From the sequence record OU343168.1: a DNA stretch of 64,000 nucleotides; one strand, written 5' to 3'. The notes under the pieces were generated by a model. It ran no database searches, had not been told where the DNA came from, and saw only the letters and a program-made list of their open reading frames with translations. This document shows, in pieces, positions 3,624-54,005 of the stretch (position 1 is its first letter; the number at the start of each line of letters is the position of its first letter). The translations under genes and the position numbers were made by a program.

Positions 3624-4184
3624 ATGAGTATGAGTACTGCTAAAAGGGGTAACTTTTCTACGTCCCCCGGCAAGGAAGACGATGATCTTCCTCTGCACGA
3701 GATCCGGGATGCCTTTAATCCCGCGTTTGTGAAAACGTTTGACAAACTGGGCCTCGACCCACAATTGATTAAAGAGTTTATTTACGCGCTTGATCTGCTC
3801 GACAACATCGTTAAGACCCCCAACTTCGTATCGGGCAGAATTCTGAATAACCGAGATATTGAAGCATACGGCGAAGAAGCGGTCTTCGCGTTCAACCGGA
3901 ATAACAACATCCCGTACTACTACGTACGGTTGGGTATTACCGTGTCGGAAACGGTGTACAAATTGCAGGACGAGTTTCTGGAACGTGATTATCCCAAAAC
4001 GATCCTGAGTATTCTCCGCCCCATGCGCACACCCGGTATTGACGTGACTGTAGACGGTCACCCTTACAACGTAGGGATCACCTTCAAAACACCTCATCCT
4101 TTGTTCGGTTTGGTGAATTACCAAGATCTCCGGACTGGGGTGAACACTTCAGTCCCCTTCCTACTCACTCGGGTGGGACTTTGA
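3624..4184 (+). CDS. Hypothetical protein
   Basis: ORF with AGGA SD before ATG 3624 (track start 3603). Confidence 0.7.
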   Translation: MSMSTAKRGNFSTSPGKEDDDLPLHEIRDAFNPAFVKTFDKLGLDPQLIKEFIYALDLLDNIVKTPNFVSGRILNNRDIEAYGEEAVFAFNRNNNIPYYYVRLGITVSETVYKLQDEFLERDYPKTILSILRPMRTPGIDVTVDGHPYNVGITFKTPHPLFGLVNYQDLRTGVNTSVPFLLTRVGL

Positions 4185-4284
4185 TCCTCTACCTGCTCCA
4201 CTGGGCTTAACGCTCCGGTGGAGCGGGGTAGGGGTTATTACCGCTTTAAATTTTTCAATACACCAACCCAAAAAGGTAATAACC

Positions 4285-8951: not shown

Positions 8952-10453
8952 TACGTGATTTTAATTCGATACCCTTGGGAACCGCCAAAGAGGTAGAGGG
9001 CTTGGTTGTAGTTCACCCCCCACGCACTCGTAGCAACACCCGAGCCCAAACTTCCCAATAGCACCCACTTGTTCAACCGAGGTTCAAAATACTGAATTGG
9101 TTGATCATTAACACTCCCCGCAATCGCGTAGAGTTCTCCATTGTTCCCCAGTACAAAGGCTGCACCAACTGGGATACCAGGAAGAGTCACCGTTGTCCAG
9201 GTGTTCGTAGCCGGGTTATACTGGTACATCCCAGGGTTGTTCGCCCCCGCCACTACCCCACCAATAACACTCACCTTCCCTTGGTAAACCATTACCGTAA
9301 AGTCAGAACAATCTCCACTCTCAGCGAAGGCCTTAAGGACAGTGTGGGTATTGGCAATAGGATCGTACTCAATCAAGAAGCCTTTATTCGTGGTGGGGGT
9401 TCCTGACTGTACTCCACAGATGTACACCTTCCCATTGAGATAAACCGCTCCACCTGTCAGCGGAGTCAGGGGCATATTAGGTAAACGGGTAACGATGTTC
9501 GTAGTGGGATTGTACCCGTACGCGTCATTCGCACCGCCCCCTAGGAAGTACAGGGTATCCTTACCGTCAGAAACCAGAATGGAGTTCTTCCGAGAGGGAT
9601 TGGCGGGCCCTGTTGGACTCAGGGTTTCAAGCGCTCGTGTTTCGAAGTTAACCCGACGGAACTCCCGGGTAGCGGTCTCTACTCCACCGTAGTAGTAGAT
9701 ATGGTTCCCATGGACACACCCCCGCCCGGTATTGAATAGCAATGAACCCGGCCAGTTATCCATCGCCTCACTCTGACCTTCAATAAACGGGTACGACCCC
9801 TTGGCATACAGAATAGGACGCCATCCTTGAGTAGGGACTTCAGAATCACTGGCGGAGTACGTGACATTCTTAATGGTGTACCACCCTCGATACGCTTGAG
9901 TGGTACCGGGTTCATTACCCGTAATGTCTTTACCCCAGTTGGTATTCCCGTCAGTATTCCCACCACTGGCCGCTTGATTCATCCCCAGTTCTGCATCCGT
10001 GAACCGAGTGGGCCAGTTGAATCCATTGGGATCTGATACATGGACGTTATACAACAACCGGTCCCATTCAGACGTTGCCGTATTGCCATCACTCCCCATG
10101 GTCAAGAGACCCACGGTGTAAATAACCCCTCGGTACCGGAGCTCATAGCTCCCTGTCCGTAGACCGGCTTGGGTCAACAGAATACGCCGAACATTATTCC
10201 GGATCGGCATTTGAGGAATGTAACAGGTTTCATTGTGGTTCGAAAACTTCAACCACGGTTTGCCTTCATTGATCACTTTACCAAAGGCAATCCCAGTGAG
10301 TTTCGCTAAATCTTCGTAACCAAACAGTTCTGTCGCAGGAGTAATCCCGTACCATCCTTGCGCAGGACTACCTGCTTTCAGTTTAGAAGGCCCCGGATAA
10401 GGATCGTCCGGAAAGGCATTCGCGGTCGATGTAAAGAGTAACGCTTCTATCAT
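8951..10453 (-). CDS. Virion protein with N-terminal jumbo-phage structural domain and C-terminal Kelch propeller
   Basis: N-terminal PGPSKLKAG...WLKF...PIR pattern; C-terminal Kelch repeats (IYYYGG, YFLGGG, YDPIANT, YNPATNTW). Confidence 0.75.
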   Translation of the reverse strand: MIEALLFTSTANAFPDDPYPGPSKLKAGSPAQGWYGITPATELFGYEDLAKLTGIAFGKVINEGKPWLKFSNHNETCYIPQMPIRNNVRRILLTQAGLRTGSYELRYRGVIYTVGLLTMGSDGNTATSEWDRLLYNVHVSDPNGFNWPTRFTDAELGMNQAASGGNTDGNTNWGKDITGNEPGTTQAYRGWYTIKNVTYSASDSEVPTQGWRPILYAKGSYPFIEGQSEAMDNWPGSLLFNTGRGCVHGNHIYYYGGVETATREFRRVNFETRALETLSPTGPANPSRKNSILVSDGKDTLYFLGGGANDAYGYNPTTNIVTRLPNMPLTPLTGGAVYLNGKVYICGVQSGTPTTNKGFLIEYDPIANTHTVLKAFAESGDCSDFTVMVYQGKVSVIGGVVAGANNPGMYQYNPATNTWTTVTLPGIPVGAAFVLGNNGELYAIAGSVNDQPIQYFEPRLNKWVLLGSLGSGVATSAWGVNYNQALYLFGGSQGYRIKIT

Positions 10454-45876: not shown

Positions 45877-47319
45877 ATGAAACCGACTAACATTACCCTC
45901 TTAGACCCCCGGACGATTGTTCCGGGTGTCTTTAAACCTATTACGTCCACGGACTCGTTTGAAGGGATGACTCAGAACCTCAATGATGATGGTCTCTTCT
46001 CCCTTGACATCTTCGGTAAACTGGGTAGTAAACAACGTGATAACACGGAAGCGTATATCGACGTTAAACTTCCCATCTTCAATCCCACTTACCTAAAAGC
46101 CCTTATACAGATCAAAAGTCTGTATCATTCAATTTTGAAAGGATCGGAATACGCGGTATGGGATCCCGAACTGAAGGATTTCATAAAATCGAACATCCTG
46201 GAAGGGGAAAAGGGTTTCGCCTTCTTCCTGAAACATTTTGATGAAACCGTCTTCTCCCTGACCCCCTCTCATAAACGCAAACAACGGGTGGAACTGGCGA
46301 ACCAATTCCGTAACACGGCGTTAACGGATAAGGTCCTGGTCATCCCCGCGGGTCTCAGGGATATCCAATTCAATCCAGATGGTTCCCACACCGAACCTGA
46401 AATCACTGAATTCTACCGCGCCTTAATGTTCCGGGTGAGGGTGATCCTCGGGAATAAGGAAGATGCCCTGAACCCCCTTTACGATACCGTTAGGTGGGGG
46501 GTACAGAATGCTTTCTTGGAATTGGATAATTACCTCTTTGGTTTACTCCAAGGGAAAGGGGGTGTTCTCCAGCGCCGTATGTCCACCCGGGGGGTTCACA
46601 ACAGCACCCGGAACGTCATTACCGCCCGTAAAGTCTCCAGGACACGTTTAGACTTCGACGACGGTGTAGGTCCTAACTCTGCGGACATGGGACTCTACCA
46701 AGCCCTACTGAACTTCCCTTATGTCTGCATCAATGCGTTAACCAACGGCTACCTTTCCAACATCTTCACCCCCAGCTCTCAAACCGCTAAGCTGGTGAAT
46801 ACCAAGACCCTGGAATACGAATACGCTGAAGTCTCCCCTGAGGTGGTAGAGAAATGGACCACCGCCACCGGGTTAATGAAACTCTTCAACGGGTTTGCCG
46901 ATCCCTCCTTACGGAGTAAACCCATTGTCATTGAGTGGAAATACTTAGCCCTCATTTATGATGATGGGACTGATGTGTGTGTTCTCCATGACATCAACGA
47001 TCTCCCTCAAGGGAAAGACCGTAAATGGGTGAAACCTATCACCTACATGGAACTCTTCTACTTGAGTTGCCACAGTGTCATCGAAGAACAGATTACGGGA
47101 CAAACCCGGTATCCCATTACGGGGATTGGCTCTATCTTCCCGGCTAAGGTGAACCTACGTACCACCACCAATGCGAGTCAGAGGGTGATCCGTAATCCGA
47201 TTGATTGGAGTGTACGGGAAACCTGTAAACGGTTCCCTAAACGCGAAGCGCATCCCGATTACTTCGATGCCATGTCCGTAGACCCCTCTAGAGAAGCTTT
47301 GCTCGACAGTGACCATGAT
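45877..47319 (+). CDS. rpoC: Virion RNA polymerase beta' subunit fragment (phiKZ gp180-like), exon 1
   Basis: DGLFSLDIFG, VLVIPAGLRD, LQGKGG..R...RGV motifs; ends ...LLDSDHD at the 5' splice site. Confidence 0.9.
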
Positions 47320-49091
47320 TAGATAGTGATGCATGATATAAACTCACTATACAACTCCTATTGTATGCGGAAGTGTTCGCATTCGACCATAAGGAGTTGT
47401 AAAGATGCTAACGTGTTTTGGAAAGAAATACGTGTTGTCTACAACCAACACGGTTTACAATGTCACCGATAAGACAGATGTTCCAGTCCATCGGATGACA
47501 GACGGGAATACGTTCTTCATCGCACGGGGCGATGAAAACGAACTGGTTAAGATCAAACTGGGGTTAATGATCCTCCATGGAGAAGGAAAGTTCCATCTTC
47601 CTCTCTCTGAATGGGAACAGGTGAAAGTAGGTTTTCTGGATGACGATACAGGAAACTTTGCAGCGGATAACCTTTACTTGGTCTATCCTGAAGAGGGCAT
47701 CCCTTACCCTGAACTCTCTGGGTACTACTACATCCCTGGGTTTGAACTCAACGCAATCAACCGAGACGGTGTGGTATACCGAACAGTTAGAAAGAATCTT
47801 TACCCACCGTATCTGGGTGGTAACACCGTTCCTAACAGTTTCTACCCCTTTGTTCGACTGGATGTGGTCAGTGGGGATGAACGCAAGTATGTCCACCGGC
47901 TACTGGCGGAGACCTTCGGTAAGCCGCCTAAGGGCTACCCCAAGCTACTGGTCGACCATAATGACGGTAACAAGATGAACTTCAAGCTCTTTAACTTGAT
48001 TTGGGTTACCGCTAAGGACAACTCCTTCAAAGCGTACAACAATCAAGAAGCGAGAGCGGACAATAATCCCCTGGAGGTTTTTGACAGGGAATTAGGTCAA
48101 GTCTTTAAGTACGTCAGTCAAAATGAGTTTGCTAGAACCATGGAGGTGGATTCTTGGTGCATTGGTCTGGTGCTCAAACGTCCTCGCTCGGTGTACAAGA
48201 ACAGGTACGTTCTTCGTCGGAAGGGAGATACACGTGACTTCCAAGAGATCTGGGACTATAAGCCCCCTGTGGGTAAGAAGATCCTTGCCCGGAATGTCTT
48301 CACCGGTGAAATCACGGTGTATAATTCATTGGCGGAGGCCTCTAGAGCAACACAGGTAGGGACAACAGGCATCCTGACGTCCCTGAGTAACACCAACCCG
48401 AGATCCGCCTTTAAAGACCTTCAATTCAAGCGGGAGTCTGACGAGACCCCTTGGCCCGATTTGAATGAATACGAACTGGAATGCATCCGGCGCAAGATGC
48501 ACCCTGCTACAGCTGTGTATGAAATGTTTGATTCGGTAACCCAGGAGACGTCGATTGTGTATGGCGTTGATGCAGTTACCCGAATCACCGGAGCCAATCC
48601 CCGTACCGTTATCGTTTGCGCACGAGAAGGTAAGTTGCTCCATTCCCGTTATCGTTTCAAGAAACTTACACGTTAACGAGTTTATATCCATCACTTAGTC
48701 CGGCTAGGCACGAAAGTCCTAGACCGTATTCCTCTGAATTGCTGGGAGTTCACAAAAGTCTGTTGGCTACAACGTAACTGGAAACAGTAAGCGTGAATGC
48801 GACCGAAAGGTAGAAAGAACAACAGACCTGACCTACGCTAACCAATAACGCTAAGGGTCGTAAACAAGGGACAATCAGCCGCTAAGACGCTACCGGGTAT
48901 TAGACCCTATGCGTAAAGTTCAACGACTAAGGGAGTTATGACCCTGTACACCTACCAAGGAAGGGGGTGGAAGTGGAGGAGACCTAAGGGGGAATAGACC
49001 TATTCCCTACGGTCAAGATATAGTCTGGCCCTGTTTAATAAACAGGCAGGCACCTGAGTGTGCCGGGTCCTAGTACGGACTGACCACCGCG
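47320..49091 (+). mobile_element. Group I intron (1772 nt) with HNH gene in the P1 loop
   Basis: P GAATTGCTGGGA 48736, Q ACAATCAGCC 48871, R GTTCAACGACTA 48918, S AAGATATAGTCT 49015 (P7 GACUA/UAGUC); P1 GAU|UA pairs with UAGUC 48696-48700 giving a U.G pair; ends in G. Confidence 0.93.
47405..48676 (+). CDS. Intron-encoded NUMOD4/HNH homing endonuclease
   Basis: YVHRLLAETF...VDHNDGNKMN....NLIWVTAKDN; repeated C-terminal NUMOD1-like DNA-binding modules. Confidence 0.92.
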   Translation: MLTCFGKKYVLSTTNTVYNVTDKTDVPVHRMTDGNTFFIARGDENELVKIKLGLMILHGEGKFHLPLSEWEQVKVGFLDDDTGNFAADNLYLVYPEEGIPYPELSGYYYIPGFELNAINRDGVVYRTVRKNLYPPYLGGNTVPNSFYPFVRLDVVSGDERKYVHRLLAETFGKPPKGYPKLLVDHNDGNKMNFKLFNLIWVTAKDNSFKAYNNQEARADNNPLEVFDRELGQVFKYVSQNEFARTMEVDSWCIGLVLKRPRSVYKNRYVLRRKGDTRDFQEIWDYKPPVGKKILARNVFTGEITVYNSLAEASRATQVGTTGILTSLSNTNPRSAFKDLQFKRESDETPWPDLNEYELECIRRKMHPATAVYEMFDSVTQETSIVYGVDAVTRITGANPRTVIVCAREGKLLHSRYRFKKLTR

Positions 49092-49274
49092 GGCGATCAA
49101 TTGTCGAGCCATTCTGTTGTAGCGGAAGACAGCAAACAACAGGCCTACGAACTCTTTGGGAAACGGGAGTATTACATCAGTGGTACAGGTCGGTTTTTGT
49201 ATGATCCGATCAATGAACCGATTCTCTTTATGTTTAAAGCAGCGACGAGCGGCTTAGAGGATATTGAGGTATGA
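49092..49274 (+). CDS. rpoC: RNAP beta' fragment exon 2 (60 aa; not in the ORF track)
   Basis: GGC GAT CAA... (GDQLSSHSVV...EDIEV*) completes DHD|GD; its stop overlaps the next ATG (ATGA); spliced product 541 aa. Confidence 0.9.
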   Translation, partial: GDQLSSHSVVAEDSKQQAYELFGKREYYISGTGRFLYDPINEPILFMFKAATSGLEDIEV

Positions 49275-52200
49275 GCAATCCAATTACGTATTCCGAGTTC
49301 TTTAAGCACTTTGTGCTGCGTAAGAAACAAGACGTTGTAAACCCTAAAGTCCTGGGTATTGGTGAAGTGATCCTTCCTAAGGGGAGTTTGCTGCACTTCG
49401 TACCGAAGACGGTTAATGAAAAGGGACCGGGTAGTAGTGAAGCGTTTATCAGTAACTTCCCTAAAGAGGTCTTTATTGAGTTTGTAAGGGACGGGTATAA
49501 GCCGGTGATGGGGCATGGGCGGGTAGTCGCCTATGACTACCCTAAGGCGGTTAAGGCGTACCGGGCGAGTCACTACATGTACAGCTGGGTGCGTGAGATC
49601 AGCACGGTGTACAACAAAGAGAACGTGCTAGTCGTTAAGAACTACGGGATGATTCCTCAGGGGTTCGTTTACCGTCCGAGTATTTTCGTGAATTATGAAA
49701 AATACTACAACATGATGCACCTGCTCATTGAGAACATCAATGCGGAAGCCGAGAAAGGGGTGCGTCGGCAGTATATGCGGATTGACCTGCCGTTGAACCT
49801 ACCGTCCCTGGTTGAGCTTGAGAAAGACTACGGACGGTTTATTGATGGGTTTAAGGACGGGCATCCTGTCCTGATGCGCAACATGCTGGAGAGTACGAAG
49901 GCTGAGAACTGCTATTGGCTGTTGGACCTACTGGGGTTCCTGTTTGGCCAGTATTCGTTCAGTTTGTTCGGTAAACTCACCGACCAGGCGTATAAGGATT
50001 TGCATATCCTCTTTACGTCACAAAGTAAAGTCATTGTGGTACAACTGGGGCTGTTGAAGGGTTGGTTAGATGAGACAAATCCTAAAGACGAGAAAACCTA
50101 CCCCTCTGCTCGGAAAGAGTTTGAAAGTCTGAAGACATTGACCCGCCATAATGCGGTTAAACGTTTCTATTTGGCTTTGATGAATCTTTCTCGTGGAGGC
50201 GTTCCTGAGAATGTACTCATTAAAGAGGAAACGAAAAATGTCATCCCAATTGCCGGAGAGAAAGGTACCGTTGACCAAGTGGCTGCGGGAACGTCACGAG
50301 AAGAAGAAGAAGAAACATCCAATCTTCCAGAAACCCGAGACCATACTGGCTCGGGCACGGTTCCCCGTGCTGATCGTCCTGCTGGTTCTATCCTTGATGT
50401 TTTCAGCCGAAGTGAAGGACCTGGCGAGGCACATGACGAAGAGCAAGACACAGCGGGAGAACGAGGTGCTGATTCAAATCTTGAAGAGTGGACATCGCCG
50501 GTAGATGATAAACTGCTGGAGGTGGAGAAAGTCCAAACCGAGATCAATACCAACAAGAATGTGTTTAAGACGCCTGAGAGTGGTGTAAAGCGGGCGTTGG
50601 AGGAGCGGGCTAAGGAAGGTACGCTGACGGTGGCTGAACATGATTTCTTCATGCGTAAAGCGACCCGTTATCAGCACATTGAAATGGAGAACGGTCAAAC
50701 GTTCGAAGAGTTCATTCAGATCAAACCCGAAGAGGTTAAAGACCTGGGTGGAGAGATTGAAGGTGAGTTTCTCCCCGTACTGGATGAGAGCATGTTGCGG
50801 AGTCGTGCTAAATCCCTCAAGATCGAGTATCCTCAGAAGTTTTTACACCGGGATATTGGTCGAATGGTGTTGGGTCTTCAGAACGCTGGCTTTGCGATGA
50901 ACGACTACCGGCGTGAGAAGGTCGTCAGCGTAGAAGGCAGTTACGAGGTCCACAGCATTCAGTTGCACGAAGTCAATGGTGATCAGGTCACTGTACATAC
51001 TCGGTTGCCCACGGTGCTGAAAGACGGTACGTACGTCATTGATGGTGTTAAGCAACACATGCAACTGCAACGTCGGGAGAAACCCTTCCGGAAGATCAGT
51101 CCTCGGGAAGTGGTACTGTCGAGCTACTACGACCGTAAGCTCATGGTGAGTCGTAGTCCGAAGATGGTGGATAACCTCTCTACGTTCATGGTGAAGCAAA
51201 TCTCCCTCCAGAGTAAGCGGAAAGGCTATACGGTCACTAAAGGCAGTACCTGGGATCGTTCCCTTAAAGCCCCCCGGATTTACAGCATTCTGGCTCGTCA
51301 GTACAAGTACATTACTGTCGACGGGTTGGTATTGGACTTCCGGTTGAAGGATCTCCTGGAACTCCACCCTGAGTTCAAAGCCTATACCCGCCCTGATCGG
51401 TTCTTGATTGGGGTAAAAGACGGATTACCTTTGATCATTGATGATTACGGTAACCTGTACAAAGGGGAAGAGGAGCTCGGTACCGTTGAAGACTTGCTCG
51501 GTATTGATGTTCGTAAAGCGCCTTTGGAACACGTGGTGATTAACATCAGCGGGTATTCGTTTCCGTTGGGAGTGGTCCTGTGCTTCTACTTCGGTATTGA
51601 TGAACTGTTGCGGGTGATTAAAGCCACGACACGTTCGGTACCCGTAGGGACTCGCCCTAAATTGACGGAGGATGAATACGCGATTCAGTTCAATGACGAA
51701 TACCTGATCTTTAACCGTCGGGAGAAGCTCACCACGTTGATCTTCGGTGGAATGCCGAAGTTGAACAACATCAGTAACTTCAGTCGGAGTGATTTGAATA
51801 ATAACAGTATCTGGAGTGCATTGATGGGAGACCCGCGGGTTCGTCCATCTCAGTTCCAGGAAATGAAGAACCTCTTCGATCTCTTTATCGATCCCATTAC
51901 GAAAGACCTCTTGAAAGAGATGAAGCTGTCTGAAGACTTCCATTACTTGCTGATTGATGCGGCTAAGGCATTGGAAACGGATTACAGTCGACACGAGGTG
52001 GAGATTGAAGAGCAACGCATTGTAGGGTATGAACGCTTCGCGGGTCATCTCTACACGGAATTTGTAAAGTCCATTCGTCAATACCGGAATAAAGGGAAAG
52101 GACGTAAACACAAACTGGACTTTAATCCGGATGCGGTTATTATTGCCATTGGTACTGACCGGTCTACGAACTTGGTGGAAGAAGTGAATCCGGTTCACCA

Positions 52201-52471
52201 AGTGAAGGACCAAGAGGAAGTGACGTTTGGGGGTACGGGTGGTCGTAGTGAAATCACCATGGTCAAACGCGCACGGACTCAGCTGGAGAGTTACAAAGGG
52301 GTCATCAGTGAAGCCAACAAGGACAGTGGTAAAGTGGGGTATGTGACCTACACCACCTCTGATCCGGGTATCGCTGATTTCCGAGGCAATGTTGATCCCA
52401 AGAACAAACGTACTCCTACCGGTGACGGTTCGGTAACTATGAACCTGATGTACGGTGGAACGCATGACGAT
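49271..52471 (+). CDS. rpoB: Virion RNA polymerase beta subunit (phiKZ gp178-like), exon 1
   Basis: EEVNPVHQ...EEVTFGGTGG, EANKDSGKVG beta motifs; ends ...GGTHDD at the splice site. Confidence 0.9.
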
Positions 52472-52886
52472 TGAGCTGTTGTGAAAACAATAGATCACTC
52501 AGTCCAACCAGGGAGTAATCCCTTGTTGCCATTACCTTTAATTGCGGGAACCTACTGAGAGCCTTATCTACCAAACCCGAGCAGGAAACCAACGGGTGGC
52601 CAACCATAACGGGTTGGGGACGGTAATAACGATAAGGATTGGGGAACCCTACGCAGCGAAGCACCTACGTATTGTCGAGAGGACAAGATAGGGTGAACGT
52701 TCAACGACTACGGATGAAATTTCCGGTAGAGGTGTCAGGATGATACTTCCAAAAGTAAGGTTGCCCTGTATGCTTGAGGTGTGAATAACACTGAGTACAG
52801 GGATGAAATATAGTCTCGTCATCTAAGGGAAAACCTTAGAGCGTGGTGCTACGCGCACCGGCGGATAGGATATCCGTGAAGAAACG
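52472..52886 (+). ncRNA. ORF-less group I intron (415 nt)
   Basis: P AATTGCGGGAA 52540, Q ACGCAGCGAAG about 52651, R GTTCAACGACTA 52699, S GAAATATAGTCT 52805; P1 GAU|UGAG pairs with CUCAGUC; ends ...AAACG. Confidence 0.93.
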
Positions 52887-54005
52887 GTCAAACGAGCAGT
52901 ATTCACATCGACTCAGGCCTCTCAAGCAGTGATGGCTAAGAACTACGAGATCGTTACCCTGAGAACGGGTTACGAGAATGTACTGGCTCACCGGACCTCT
53001 GACCTCTACAGCAAAGTAGCCGCTGAAGATGGTAAGGTCACTAAAGTGGAGAACGATCGCTTACTCGTCGAATACAAGGACGGAACAACGGACTCGTATC
53101 CCTTGGGGTTGGTGATTGGGGAAGCCAGTGGGGAATATCATCCCCACAGCCGTACCACAGATCTGAAGGTCGGAGATACCTTCCGTAAGGGAGATGTCAT
53201 CGGTTGGGATGAAAACTGGTTCGGTCGAGATCCCTTCTGCCCAGGGCAAGTCGGGGTTAAGATGGGTAAAATGTGCCAGATCGTTATGGTGGAAGATCAG
53301 GATGTGTACGAGGACTCTATTGCAATTTCGAAAGAATTGGCGATGGAAGCACGTACCCCATTCATTAAACCCAGTCGGTTTGCCGAGGACGTGTCAAACA
53401 ACCTGGTAATGCGGGTTAAGGTAGGAGATTACGTCGAACAGGACACGATTTTATGTGATATCGAAGAGCCTCACTTGGTGGAGGGCGAGGAGCTTCCTGA
53501 GCTCGAAGCAGACATCAACAAACTCGGTATCAAACAGATCCGTTCGAAGCATCATGGAAAGATCGTACACATCGATGTTCGGTACAACTCTCCCTTAGAC
53601 AAGATGTCTGACTCGTTCCGTTCGTTCATTGTTCAGAAGGATAAGGAAACGAAACGGAAAGGGTTGGTGGAAGGAACCGGTGTCGAGAACAATGCCATTT
53701 CCACGATGTTCAATCTTAATCGTCCCATGTTAGGTCCAGGTAAGGCGTTCATTACGTTCTACATCGAGTCGTTAGACCCGAGTACCAATGCGGATAAGTA
53801 TGTCATTGGGAACCAGATGAAAGCCACTGTGGGTCGTATCATGGAAAGACCGCTTAAGACCGCCAGTGGGATTGTCATTGATGTGAAGTCGAGCTTTAAA
53901 GGGATGTTTAACCGAATGGTGCTCAGTTTGAGGAACAAGCTGGTTGCTAACGAGTATGGTTACCAAATCACTCGCCAGGCCATTAAACTCTACAGAGGTA
54001 AATAA
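52887..54005 (+). CDS. rpoB: Virion RNAP beta subunit, exon 2
   Basis: VKRAVFTSTQASQAV joins HDD to mirror bacterial HDDANRALMGSNMQRQAV; YEDSIAIS and ADKYVIGNQMKAT motifs; spliced product 1439 aa. Confidence 0.9.
   Translation, partial: VKRAVFTSTQASQAVMAKNYEIVTLRTGYENVLAHRTSDLYSKVAAEDGKVTKVENDRLLVEYKDGTTDSYPLGLVIGEASGEYHPHSRTTDLKVGDTFRKGDVIGWDENWFGRDPFCPGQVGVKMGKMCQIVMVEDQDVYEDSIAISKELAMEARTPFIKPSRFAEDVSNNLVMRVKVGDYVEQDTILCDIEEPHLVEGEELPELEADINKLGIKQIRSKHHGKIVHIDVRYNSPLDKMSDSFRSFIVQKDKETKRKGLVEGTGVENNAISTMFNLNRPMLGPGKAFITFYIESLDPSTNADKYVIGNQMKATVGRIMERPLKTASGIVIDVKSSFKGMFNRMVLSLRNKLVANEYGYQITRQAIKLYRGK

Follow-up and report, generated by a model that had tools for sequence, protein, structure and literature searches.

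Introns that carry HNH endonuclease genes occur in RNA polymerase (RNAP) genes of phiKZ-like phages, as a sequence-only reading of the DNA analyzed here had correctly stated, and in phiKZ the very gene described below holds one (PMC11620839, PMC12676376, PMC10914365). The phiKZ gp179 intron, located in gp180, was predicted in 2002 and is referred to as "intron-encoded" in later work (PMC10914365, PMC12676376), and a full-length transcriptome study found no spliced reads for it under its conditions (PMC10914365). For PhiPA3, experiments have established that the intron-borne endonuclease gp210 nicks the allele of a competing phage that lacks the intron (Birkholz et al. 2024, PMC11620839), and a weapon role between co-infecting phages has been shown for it (PMC11620839). 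[quoted passage not shown]

The window, i.e. 64,000 nucleotides of record OU343168.1, is the genome of an EL-type Pseudomonas phage (Elvirus). Within it, positions 47320-49091 very probably represent a mobile group I intron with an HNH gene inside the gene that encodes the N-terminal half of the virion RNAP beta' subunit. We are equally confident of its position, which falls within the Mg-binding DxDGD motif, after the second Asp and before the Gly (DSDHD/GDQ; here and below, a slash within a motif or codon string marks a junction). Splicing of this segment is predicted from sequence. The main features are as follows.

45877..47319, + strand: exon 1 of the beta' N-terminal subunit gene (gp184), from the ORF list, tblastn, family profile and alignment
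47320..49091, + strand: very probable group I intron, 1772 nt, from Rfam RF00028, intron-less homologues and covariation
47405..48676, + strand: HNH homing endonuclease gene (EL gp185, 423 aa), in the P1 loop, from Pfam, PDB and homologues
49092..49274, + strand: exon 2 of the beta' N-terminal subunit gene, unannotated, from tblastn and alignment

The 481-aa ORF at 45877-47322 closes with ...REALLDSDHD and a TAG stop at 47320-47322. Its end, ...LDSDHD, supplies the first two Asp of the DxDGD triad, and the intron begins UAG, an in-frame stop for unspliced RNA. The intron closes with a terminal G at 49091 (G49091/GGC GAU CAA), and from 49092 the frame is open again for 60 codons plus stop (GDQLSSHSVVAEDSK...GLEDIEV). 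This second exon begins GDQLSS, carries the third catalytic Asp, and has its stop (49272-49274) overlapping the ATG of gp186 at 49271. The DSDHD-TAG stop, the 1772-nt insert and the unannotated 60-codon frame had all been pointed out from the letters alone, and all lie exactly where they had been placed.

Homology supports continuity of the two exons. In tblastn, exon 1 is 100% identical to EL gp184 and 57% identical to gp231 of Erwinia phage Joad, while exon 2 is 72.7% identical to Joad with a match starting one base after that of exon 1. Joad has no intron and reads an unbroken ...SDHD/GDAL... at the junction point. Matches adjoin likewise in N1M2, Yubaba, LAh10, AH04, pAEv1810, AerS_266 and EarlPhillipIV, i.e. 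they are base-adjacent in 8 intron-less phages. An alignment of 22 sequences has exon 1 ending ...SDHD and GDQ of exon 2 in the very next column, and the frame obtained by joining the exons agrees with intron-less homologues residue by residue. In EL, the DxDGD motif arises only when the exons are joined (DSDHD plus GD); in all 86 full-length relatives it is contiguous. Among the best 120 clusters, family length is bimodal, with 86 longer than ~535 aa and containing DxDGD and ~29 stopping inside or just past the motif. The element itself is kept in all nine Elvirus genomes of the phage collection (97.8-100% identity).

The family profile of gp184 matches the beta' subunit of the AR9 non-virion RNAP (7S00/7S01; E about 1e-10), with weaker matches to plastid, cyanobacterial and bacterial beta'/gamma subunits, and the family motif DFDGDQLN aligns with the catalytic AR9 GDYDGDVLN. 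As judged from these profile and motif matches, gp184 is the N-terminal half of beta'. The family profile was needed to reach beta' since a PDB search with exon 1 as a single sequence returned nothing; a Pfam search of both exon products and gp186 found no family. By analogy with phiKZ gp180, which is annotated "structural head protein", the EL protein would reside in the virion. EL-type phages are reported to have a separate non-virion beta'/beta set (PMC2919709), but this belongs to a different enzyme and so would not stand in for the virion polymerase.

Jumbo-phage RNAP genes are often divided into separate subunits (PMC7598289), and the locus could be read in the same way, with gp184 (481 aa) on one side of a free-standing HNH gene, the frame of a small, independently translated protein on the other, and the two proteins assembling without any splicing. 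In principle, translation of a 57-aa product might begin at a TTG at 49101, and the phiKZ counterpart lacked spliced reads in one study (PMC10914365). However, a start at 49101 drops Gly-Asp-Gln, including the third catalytic Asp, and there is no start codon before GDQ. Furthermore, where beta' is known to be naturally split, the break follows the double-psi beta-barrel domain (PMC7598289), a position equivalent to the end of exon 2 and not to the DSDHD/GD point, where the relatives are contiguous at exactly that residue. Together with the nature of the intervening RNA, i.e. a covarying group I ribozyme whose P1 U.G pair falls exactly at the codon boundary, this makes a natural split very improbable.

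The ribozyme of the proposed intron was recovered by the Rfam group I search that the sequence-only reading had suggested. The RF00028 match (48673-49045) covers the full model (1-253) at 50.6 bits (E 6.8e-10), which exceeds the gathering score of 50 by a small margin, and RF00028 is the sole Rfam family to reach its gathering score across the 64 kb. Its elements, all on the + strand, are listed below.

48737-48746, + strand: P element (AAUUGCUGGG), from sequence and Rfam
48873-48879, + strand: Q element (AAUCAGC), from sequence and Rfam
48918-48929, + strand: R element (GUUCAACGACUA), from sequence and Rfam
49015-49025, + strand: S element (AAGAUAUAGUC), from sequence and Rfam
48704..48722, + strand: P2 hairpin, 7 pairs, 5 with compensatory changes, 100% paired
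48729-33 with 48976-80, + strand: P3, from helix coordinates, covariation and Rfam alignment
48740-45 with 48875-80, + strand: P4, from the same three sources
48749-52 with 48869-72, + strand: P5, plus extensions, from the same three sources
48886-90 with 48911-15, + strand: P6, from the same three sources
48925-48929, + strand: P7 5' strand GACUA, from sequence and Rfam alignment
49021..49025, + strand: P7 3' strand UAGUC, forming the P3/P7 pseudoknot with 48925-48929, from Rfam alignment
48930-34 with 48942-45, + strand: P7.1, covariation in 3 of 4 pairs
48949-55 with 48963-69, + strand: P7.2, covariation in 5 of 7 pairs
48981-84 with 49011-14 and 48988-93 with 49003-08, + strand: P8 (span 48981..49014), 10 pairs, 8 compensatory, 100% paired
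49030-36 with 49040-46, + strand: P9, read from sequence and Rfam alignment
49049-53 with 49060-64, + strand: P9.1, from covariation
49066-70 with 49077-81, + strand: P9.2, from covariation

The four core elements P, Q, R and S, with P7 formed by GACUA and UAGUC, are thus present as the letters had suggested, and the RF00028 match agrees with them. The P3 span (48729..48980) encloses P4, P5 with its extensions, P6, the 5' strand of P7, P7.1 and P7.2, while the peripheral helices P9, P9.1 and P9.2 span 49030..49081. All core helices are intact, and the placement of P7.1 and P7.2 between the 5' strand of P7 and the 3' strand of P3 points to an intron of subgroup IA type.

Covariation was counted over 7 related sequences, with a tested structure derived from these same sequences. 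Of its 78 pairs in 16 helices, 94.9% are paired, compared with 36-45% when partners are slid, and 46 show changes on both sides, compared with 8-17 in the slid controls; no measure attained its observed value in any of 500 shuffles. P7 is invariant in all 7 homologues and is therefore uninformative for covariation, and P9 is out of register in the MAFFT alignment, so no covariation is countable for it. RNAalifold cannot draw the P3/P7 pseudoknot and replaced P7 by two small local hairpins; these artefacts, and a spurious pairing of columns 10-11 with 439-440, were removed and P7 was inserted before pairs were counted. The sequence features, the family membership, the covariation and the continuity of the exons by homology are direct observations, and the intron identity, both boundaries, the U.G splice site, the location of the HNH gene within the P1 loop and the split motif proposed for this segment are borne out by Rfam, covariation and the residue-exact alignment to uninterrupted homologues.

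The 5' splice site is defined by P1, which would be assembled from distant strands as follows.

47317..47321, + strand: P1 5' strand, i.e. exon GAU, splice site and intron UA, from sequence and cofold
47325..47345, + strand: P1 extension 5' strand, i.e. AGUGAUG, a CAU bulge and GAUAUAAACUC, from sequence and cofold
47350..47401, + strand: hairpin upstream of the HNH gene, a 10-bp stem (47350-47359 with 47392-47401), from folding
48678..48700, + strand: P1 extension 3' strand (48678-48695) and guide UUAGUC (48695-48700), from sequence and cofold

The P1 pairs are G47317-C48700, A47318-U48699, U47319.G48698, U47320-A48697 and A47321-U48696, which sets the U.G wobble (U47319.G48698) at the 5' splice site, GAU/UA opposite UAGUC. 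The exon contributes only three base pairs to P1, or five with an internal loop, and inspection by eye for a P10 that would join the guide region to the first bases of exon 2 gave nothing convincing. The long-range stem had been proposed to loop out the HNH gene and close P1 with this U.G pair, and its two helices are indeed found, 47325-47331 with 48689-48695 (7 bp) and 47335-47345 with 48678-48688 (11 bp). Cofolding the two strands gives -25.5 kcal/mol, with none of 1000 shuffles as good (mean -11.9), and an equally good pairing occurs in 1 of 9139 31-nt segments sampled every 7 nt across the window. The pairing of GAU/U.. with ..AGUC also exists in phiKp_32, VP4B, TSL-2019, ZK_P1 and the second EL intron described below, and the same GAU/guide pairing can be read by eye in phiKZ; FishSpeaker has UGUC where the others have AGUC.

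The neighboring beta gene contains a second candidate.

52472..52886, + strand: second group I intron, ORF-less, 415 nt, from Rfam, collinearity and splice sites

Its RF00028 match (40.5 bits; E 6.8e-7 for the whole window) is below the gathering score. It follows gp186 (...GGTHDD) and precedes the point where the gp187 frame truly begins (VKRAVF...), with splice sites GAU/UGAG and ..ACG/GUC. In Joad, gp232 (1438 aa) aligns collinearly with gp186 followed by the extended gp187 frame, and at this point the phiKZ gp178 sequence is EHDD/PKRINF. Removal of the second intron would join gp186 and gp187 into one beta-like protein of ~1439 aa, with a predicted ligated junction CATGACGAT/GTCAAACGA.

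These data also bear on whether the beta' element is a decayed relic that no longer splices, with gp184 a pseudogene and early transcription carried out by another enzyme. The borderline Rfam score, the short exon part of P1 and the missing P10 could be taken as signs of such decay. By contrast, all EL core helices are intact, both exons are strongly conserved at the protein level (57% and 73% identity to Joad), element and exons are kept in nine independently isolated and viable Elvirus phages, and the beta gene is arranged likewise, so we regard a relic as very unlikely, much as we do a natural split. An intein or ribosomal bypass of the interruption is less probable still: inteins are known in jumbo phage genes (PMC13282480; bioRxiv 10.1101/2020.12.14.422802), but this insert opens with an in-frame stop and does not share one open frame with the exons, its HNH ORF lies in another register with a Shine-Dalgarno of its own, and no intein domain was found. 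Overall, intein, frameshift and natural split were rejected on reading frames and homology.

For the preferred reading, a group I intron, we infer splicing itself, the activity and target of the nuclease, and any regulation. In the pre-mRNA, the last exon bases GAU and the first two intron bases would pair with UUAGUC 1.38 kb downstream to form P1, with the 7- and 11-bp extension helices closing a 1.33-kb loop that holds the endonuclease gene, and the P3-P9 core would fold downstream of this closed loop. The first attack, by guanosine, would fall after U47319, and the second, by the released exon 1, after G49091. The resulting message, ...GAC CAU GAU/GGC GAU CAA..., would encode a 541-aa subunit with the triad intact, with GACCATGAT/GGCGATCAA as the predicted exon junction in RNA and ...LLDSDHDGDQLSS... 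or ...EALLDSDHDGDQLSSHSVVAEDSK as the predicted junction peptide of the spliced product. Unspliced RNA would be translated up to UAG, the first intron codon, and yield 481 aa without the third Asp and the last 58 residues. The proposal that the intron could be removed viably only by its precise loss is a reasonable and standard inference, which has been put in general terms elsewhere (PMC12908238).

The intron-encoded gp185 matches Pfam HNH_3 over residues 161-207 (42.6 bits, cut-off 24.8; E 4.7e-11), and weakly NUMOD1 (13.9 bits, below the cut-off of 22.8). It aligns with I-HmuI (PDB 1U3E; E 0.0012) through the DH..GN..N motif, i.e. VDHNDGNKMN...NLIWVT in gp185 with VDHKDGNKDN...NLRWVT in I-HmuI, and shares 30-37% identity over its length with ORFs of homologous introns. 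These matches suggest an I-HmuI-like HNH endonuclease with predicted nicking activity. By analogy with I-HmuI and PhiPA3 gp210, gp185 presumably nicks this conserved DNA in intron-less alleles at co-infection, which would lead to homing. Expression of gp185 may be restrained: its Shine-Dalgarno AAGGAG is sequestered in the stem of the hairpin at 47350-47401 (MFE -23.9 kcal/mol, z = -4.27, a stability matched by none of 200 shuffles), and this predicted fold could plausibly act as a brake.

Exon 2 is unannotated in the EL RefSeq (NC_007623) and is not an exon in any of the 8 other Elvirus records. Two essential polymerase genes are wrongly described in each of the nine public Elvirus genomes of the phage collection: gp184 is annotated without its last 60 codons, which include a catalytic Asp, and gp186 and gp187 are really one gene; the phiKZ gp180 annotation has the same gap. 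No description of the EL intron was found in the literature searched, which did not cover the 2005 EL genome paper. That paper (Hertveldt et al. 2005, J Mol Biol 354:536) is cited by a 2026 review for jumbo-phage introns. The EL intron adds a genuine, though expected, case to a known class of mobile elements, and changes no concept in the field.

Homologous introns are present in phiKp_32, VP4B, PDCC-1, TSL-2019, FishSpeaker and ZK_P1 (mean column identity 65-68%), and 4 of 5 scanned match RF00028 (37.5-51.7 bits), with FishSpeaker and ZK_P1 outside the Rfam scan. These related introns occupy at least three sites inside the DxDGD motif, each after an Asp GAU codon. A fourth site in the motif holds a different insert, the 258 nt of Aeromonas phage PS1, which stays unclassified since it has no Rfam match at E up to 10. 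With homologous introns at neighboring Asp codons of other jumbo phages as well, mobile introns are seen to favor the Mg-binding motif of the virion polymerase as a landing site, which fits the idea that such elements persist best at places where losing them imprecisely would be lethal. In view of the PhiPA3 case, these introns are further candidates for nuclease-mediated phage competition. Tentatively, and with more doubt than confidence, we suggest that one ribozyme-plus-HNH family with an ..AGUC guide on GAU sits at three DxDGD Asp codons and after the beta Asp-Asp, that the DNA of the RNAP active site may be a recurrent battleground of homing nucleases, and that these could act as inter-phage weapons.

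Among known systems, the phiKZ gp179 intron interrupts the same catalytic motif of the same gene as the EL intron does, and is also group I (Rfam 92.2 bits). Its HNH-type ORF is homologous to gp185 (26% identity, E 1.6e-16), its 5' exon likewise ends GAU opposite an ..AAGUC guide (by eye), and exon 2 of gp180 is unannotated as in EL. It differs in being inserted two codons upstream (GAD/FDGD vs DHD/GD), in being shorter (1443 nt), in having a core too distant for blastn detection, and in an ORF whose 3' end overlaps the ribozyme start. The intron of Klebsiella phage phiKp_32 (LC768500, 218606-218985) shares with EL an identical insertion point (DFD/GDQ), a homologous core and the P1 design (GAU/UG with CAGUC, a compensatory A-U to G-C change). 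However, it is ORF-less, 380 nt long and has a simple local hairpin as P1, and looks like the form without a nuclease gene.

PhiPA3 gp210, like gp185, is an HNH protein in a group I intron of a virion RNAP subunit gene of a phiKZ-like phage, and its intron is placed right after conserved acidic residues, but in the beta gene (gp211/209) rather than in beta'. The equivalent beta site of EL is occupied too, by the ORF-less intron at 52472-52886. The nicking activity of gp210 has been shown by experiment, whereas that of gp185 is predicted. More distantly, the Staphylococcus Twort-like phage introns show ~81% identity to EL in P4-P5 over ~65 nt and the same subgroup IA type architecture with P7.1/P7.2, but the similarity is short and local, and genes and hosts differ. 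The nucleases of the SPO1/SP82 introns (I-HmuI/I-HmuII) belong to the same structural HNH family as gp185, but their host gene is a DNA polymerase, and gp185 has 423 aa with a long C-terminal extension compared with the 174 aa of I-HmuI.

The region 45877-49300 of the window matches Pseudomonas phage vB_PaeM_phiRU at 100% identity, phage EL at 99.0%, and six further Elvirus records at 97.8-98.5%. Genes are named here as in the EL RefSeq record:

gp183: minus strand, 2543-aa protein
gp184: 45877-47322, annotated as "RNA polymerase beta subunit"
gp185: 47405-48676, HNH endonuclease
gp186: 49271-52474
gp187: 52929-54005

EL RefSeq carries no annotation between gp185 and gp186, and the beta' intron (47320-49091) and exon 2 are unannotated in every record of the nine Elvirus genomes. 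Separately, the record of phage HHBS8_1 (PQ287644; locus L002, 1501-2944) divides beta' exon 1 between two CDS that overlap (1501-2253 and 2132-2944), which suggests a frameshift or sequencing error in the deposit.

The sequence-only reading had proposed that a group I intron splits the beta' gene, and the features it named are all present. Specifically, the ORF at 45877-47322 terminates ...REALLDSDHD-TAG, and the frame open from 49092 downstream of the insert reads GDQLSSHSVVAEDSKQQAYELFGKREYYISGTGRFLYDPINEPILFMFKAATSGLEDIEV, its stop overlapping the gp186 ATG. The P, Q, R, and S elements and P7 lie where they had been placed, with GACUA (48925-29) pairing with UAGUC (49021-25). Both long-range stems (47325-31/48689-95 and 47335-45/48678-88) are perfect, and they run on into P1 with a U.G pair at the splice site (G47317-C48700, A47318-U48699, U47319.G48698, U47320-A48697, and A47321-U48696). 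The cofold of the P1 and long-range strands reaches -25.5 kcal/mol, with 0 of 1000 shuffles as good, and among 9139 tiled segments from the whole window just one pairs as well as the P1 extension.

In an Rfam search, which that reading had also proposed for the group I models, RF00028 alone reached its gathering score anywhere in the window (48673-49045; 50.6 bits against a gathering score of 50, E = 6.8e-10). Given this thin margin, homologous introns were sought. Searches with the core (blastn) recover homologues in the jumbo phages VP4B, PDCC-1, FishSpeaker, TSL-2019, ZK_P1, and phiKp_32, all six of which carry theirs in the same beta' gene, and RF00028 is matched independently by 4 of 5 homologous introns scanned with Rfam (37.5-51.7 bits). 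The seven aligned cores have a mean column identity of 68%, and RNAalifold recovers P2, P3, P4, P5 with its extensions, P6, P7.1, P7.2, P8, P9.1, and P9.2; the P3/P7 pseudoknot was added by hand before pairs were counted. Across these cores, 94.9% of cells are paired, a share that falls to 36-45% once the partners are shifted by 1-3 columns, and 46 of 78 pairs show changes on both sides vs 8-17 in the shifted controls. None of 500 covariation shuffles equals the observed value on any measure. The presence of P7.1/P7.2 points to subgroup IA, and a short P4-P5 stretch is similar to that of Twort-like Staphylococcus phage introns.

We conclude that the insert at 47320-49091 is a group I intron, and we infer that it is spliced. 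The structural and comparative evidence is not outweighed by the weak points, namely an exon part of P1 that is short, a P10 that was not found for this intron, and the zero spliced reads obtained for phiKZ introns in one transcriptome study (PMC10914365).

The predicted junction is supported by intron-less relatives. When the two exon products are run as separate tblastn queries, the exon 1 match ends one base ahead of the exon 2 match in Joad (215285/215286), N1M2, Yubaba, LAh10, AH04, pAEv1810, AerS_266, and EarlPhillipIV. Joad, for example, is uninterrupted at the EL insertion point (...REAGLGSDHD/GDALSAIAV..., the slash marking here and below the splice or insertion point). Aligned against 20 full-length relatives, the last residues of EL exon 1 (...DSDHD) and the first of exon 2 (GDQ) fall in adjoining columns, with zero gap or overlap. 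Exon 1 closes with a whole GAU codon and a G stands immediately before 49092, so no alternative splice-site pair keeps both the frame and D/G.

For the host protein, a PDB single-sequence search and a Pfam scan found nothing; the gp184-family profile matches beta' of the non-virion AR9 polymerase (7S00/7S01, E about 1e-10), with weaker matches to cellular beta'/gamma subunits. The phiKZ homologue of gp184 is gp180. The family's SDFDGDQLN aligns with GDYDGDVLN of AR9, and the EL intron therefore parts the first two metal-binding aspartates from the third.

Within the five codons of DxDGD, homologous beta' introns are found at three positions: after the first, second, or third aspartate.

Insertion sites in the compared beta' loci
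EL and phiKp_32 (L004): after the second Asp (DxD/GD)
TSL-2019 (L006): after the first Asp (GGD/YDGD)
VP4B (L008), FishSpeaker (L009), and ZK_P1 (L010): after the third Asp (DxDGD/Q)
phiKZ (L011): after the first Asp (GAD/FDGD)

The 5' exon ends on GAU in all seven phages, and the guide sequence ends in AGUC in most of these introns and in UGUC in FishSpeaker. Among the 120 best protein clusters in public data, 86 are full-length with DxDGD and about 29 (roughly a quarter) stop after D1, D2, G, or D3; from these ORF ends we infer that the truncated clusters carry introns. Intron-free, D2-cut, and D3-cut forms all occur among the relatives nearest to EL (70-77% identity), a sporadic distribution that is typical of mobile introns.

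In phiKZ (AF399011), gp180 terminates ...PLGAD and is followed by a 1443-nt group I intron with gp179 (L011 7959-9401; Rfam 92.2 bits). Exon 2 (9402-9590), opening FDGDTVSFNAV..., is unannotated, and the type phage therefore shares the Elvirus annotation gap.

Two other loci depart from this arrangement. As deposited, exon 1 of Photobacterium phage PDCC-1 (MN562221; L005 4932-6651) ends ...LGGD on GAC, not GAU, and exon 2 opens QLN; the codons YDGD are absent from the entire locus. The 5' part of its intron and the nuclease gene match TSL-2019 (nuclease protein 100% identical) and the core and 3' end match VP4B. The choice lies between two tandem introns collapsed during assembly and a dead recombinant allele. 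In Aeromonas phage PS1 (NC_070998; L007 about 3944-4201), the motif is interrupted between DFDG and D by a 258-nt insert bounded by U/ and G/. No Rfam family matches this insert, even at E = 10, and tblastn points to a like arrangement in PS2, ZPAH34, ACP1, and AhC3_1.

The intron-borne gp185 has an HNH_3 domain (Pfam, E = 4.7e-11), and its match to the I-HmuI structure (1U3E) retains the catalytic DH...N...N pattern. Along its length it shares 30-37% identity with the intron ORFs of FishSpeaker, ZK_P1, and TSL-2019/PDCC-1; its identity to phiKZ gp179 is 26%. The gene lies wholly within the P1 loop, its stop codon (48674-76) ending one base short of the stem. At exactly this insertion point, phiKp_32 has an ORF-less intron whose P1 shares the EL design but forms a short local hairpin, as would be expected if the nuclease gene entered, or was lost from, the P1 loop. 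A 10-bp hairpin (47350-47401; MFE -23.9 kcal/mol, z = -4.27) hides the gp185 Shine-Dalgarno AAGGAG, and the AUG sits in a second small hairpin. Translational restraint has been described for T4 intron nucleases, and the hidden Shine-Dalgarno suggests, by resemblance only, a similar restraint of gp185.

At 52472-52886, between the end of gp186 (...GGTHDD-TGA) and the gp187 frame, lies a second group I intron, 415 nt long and without an ORF. It scores 40.5 bits in Rfam (E = 6.8e-7), short of the gathering score. The predicted splice sites are GAU/UGAG and ACG/GUC, with P1 formed by GAU/UGAG and CUCAGUC. The gp187 frame is open from 52869, and its annotated GTG start (52929) is probably spurious. 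From 52887 (VKRAVFTSTQ...) the frame is collinear with Joad gp232 and phiKZ gp178, so gp186 and gp187, treated earlier as possibly separate ORFs in EL (PMC2919709), would together make a single protein of about 1439 aa. This second intron follows two conserved beta-subunit aspartates, a position equivalent to that of the PhiPA3 gp210 intron; gp210 has been characterized by experiment (PMC11620839).

RNA polymerase gene introns of jumbo phages are already well documented, including those of AR9 and Staphylococcus jumbo phages (bioRxiv 10.1101/2020.12.14.422802) and of 201phi2-1 (gp273/274; PMC2919709). The prediction of phiKZ gp72 and gp179 as "intron-encoded homing endonucleases" dates from 2002 (discussed in PMC10914365 and PMC12676376), and the 2005 EL genome paper is itself cited as a source for introns. 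That such introns favor active-site codons, where imprecise loss is lethal, is a textbook principle (PMC12908238). Set against these known introns, and with the intron and exon 2 unannotated across Elvirus, we therefore rate the EL beta' intron as new, or at least newly delimited.
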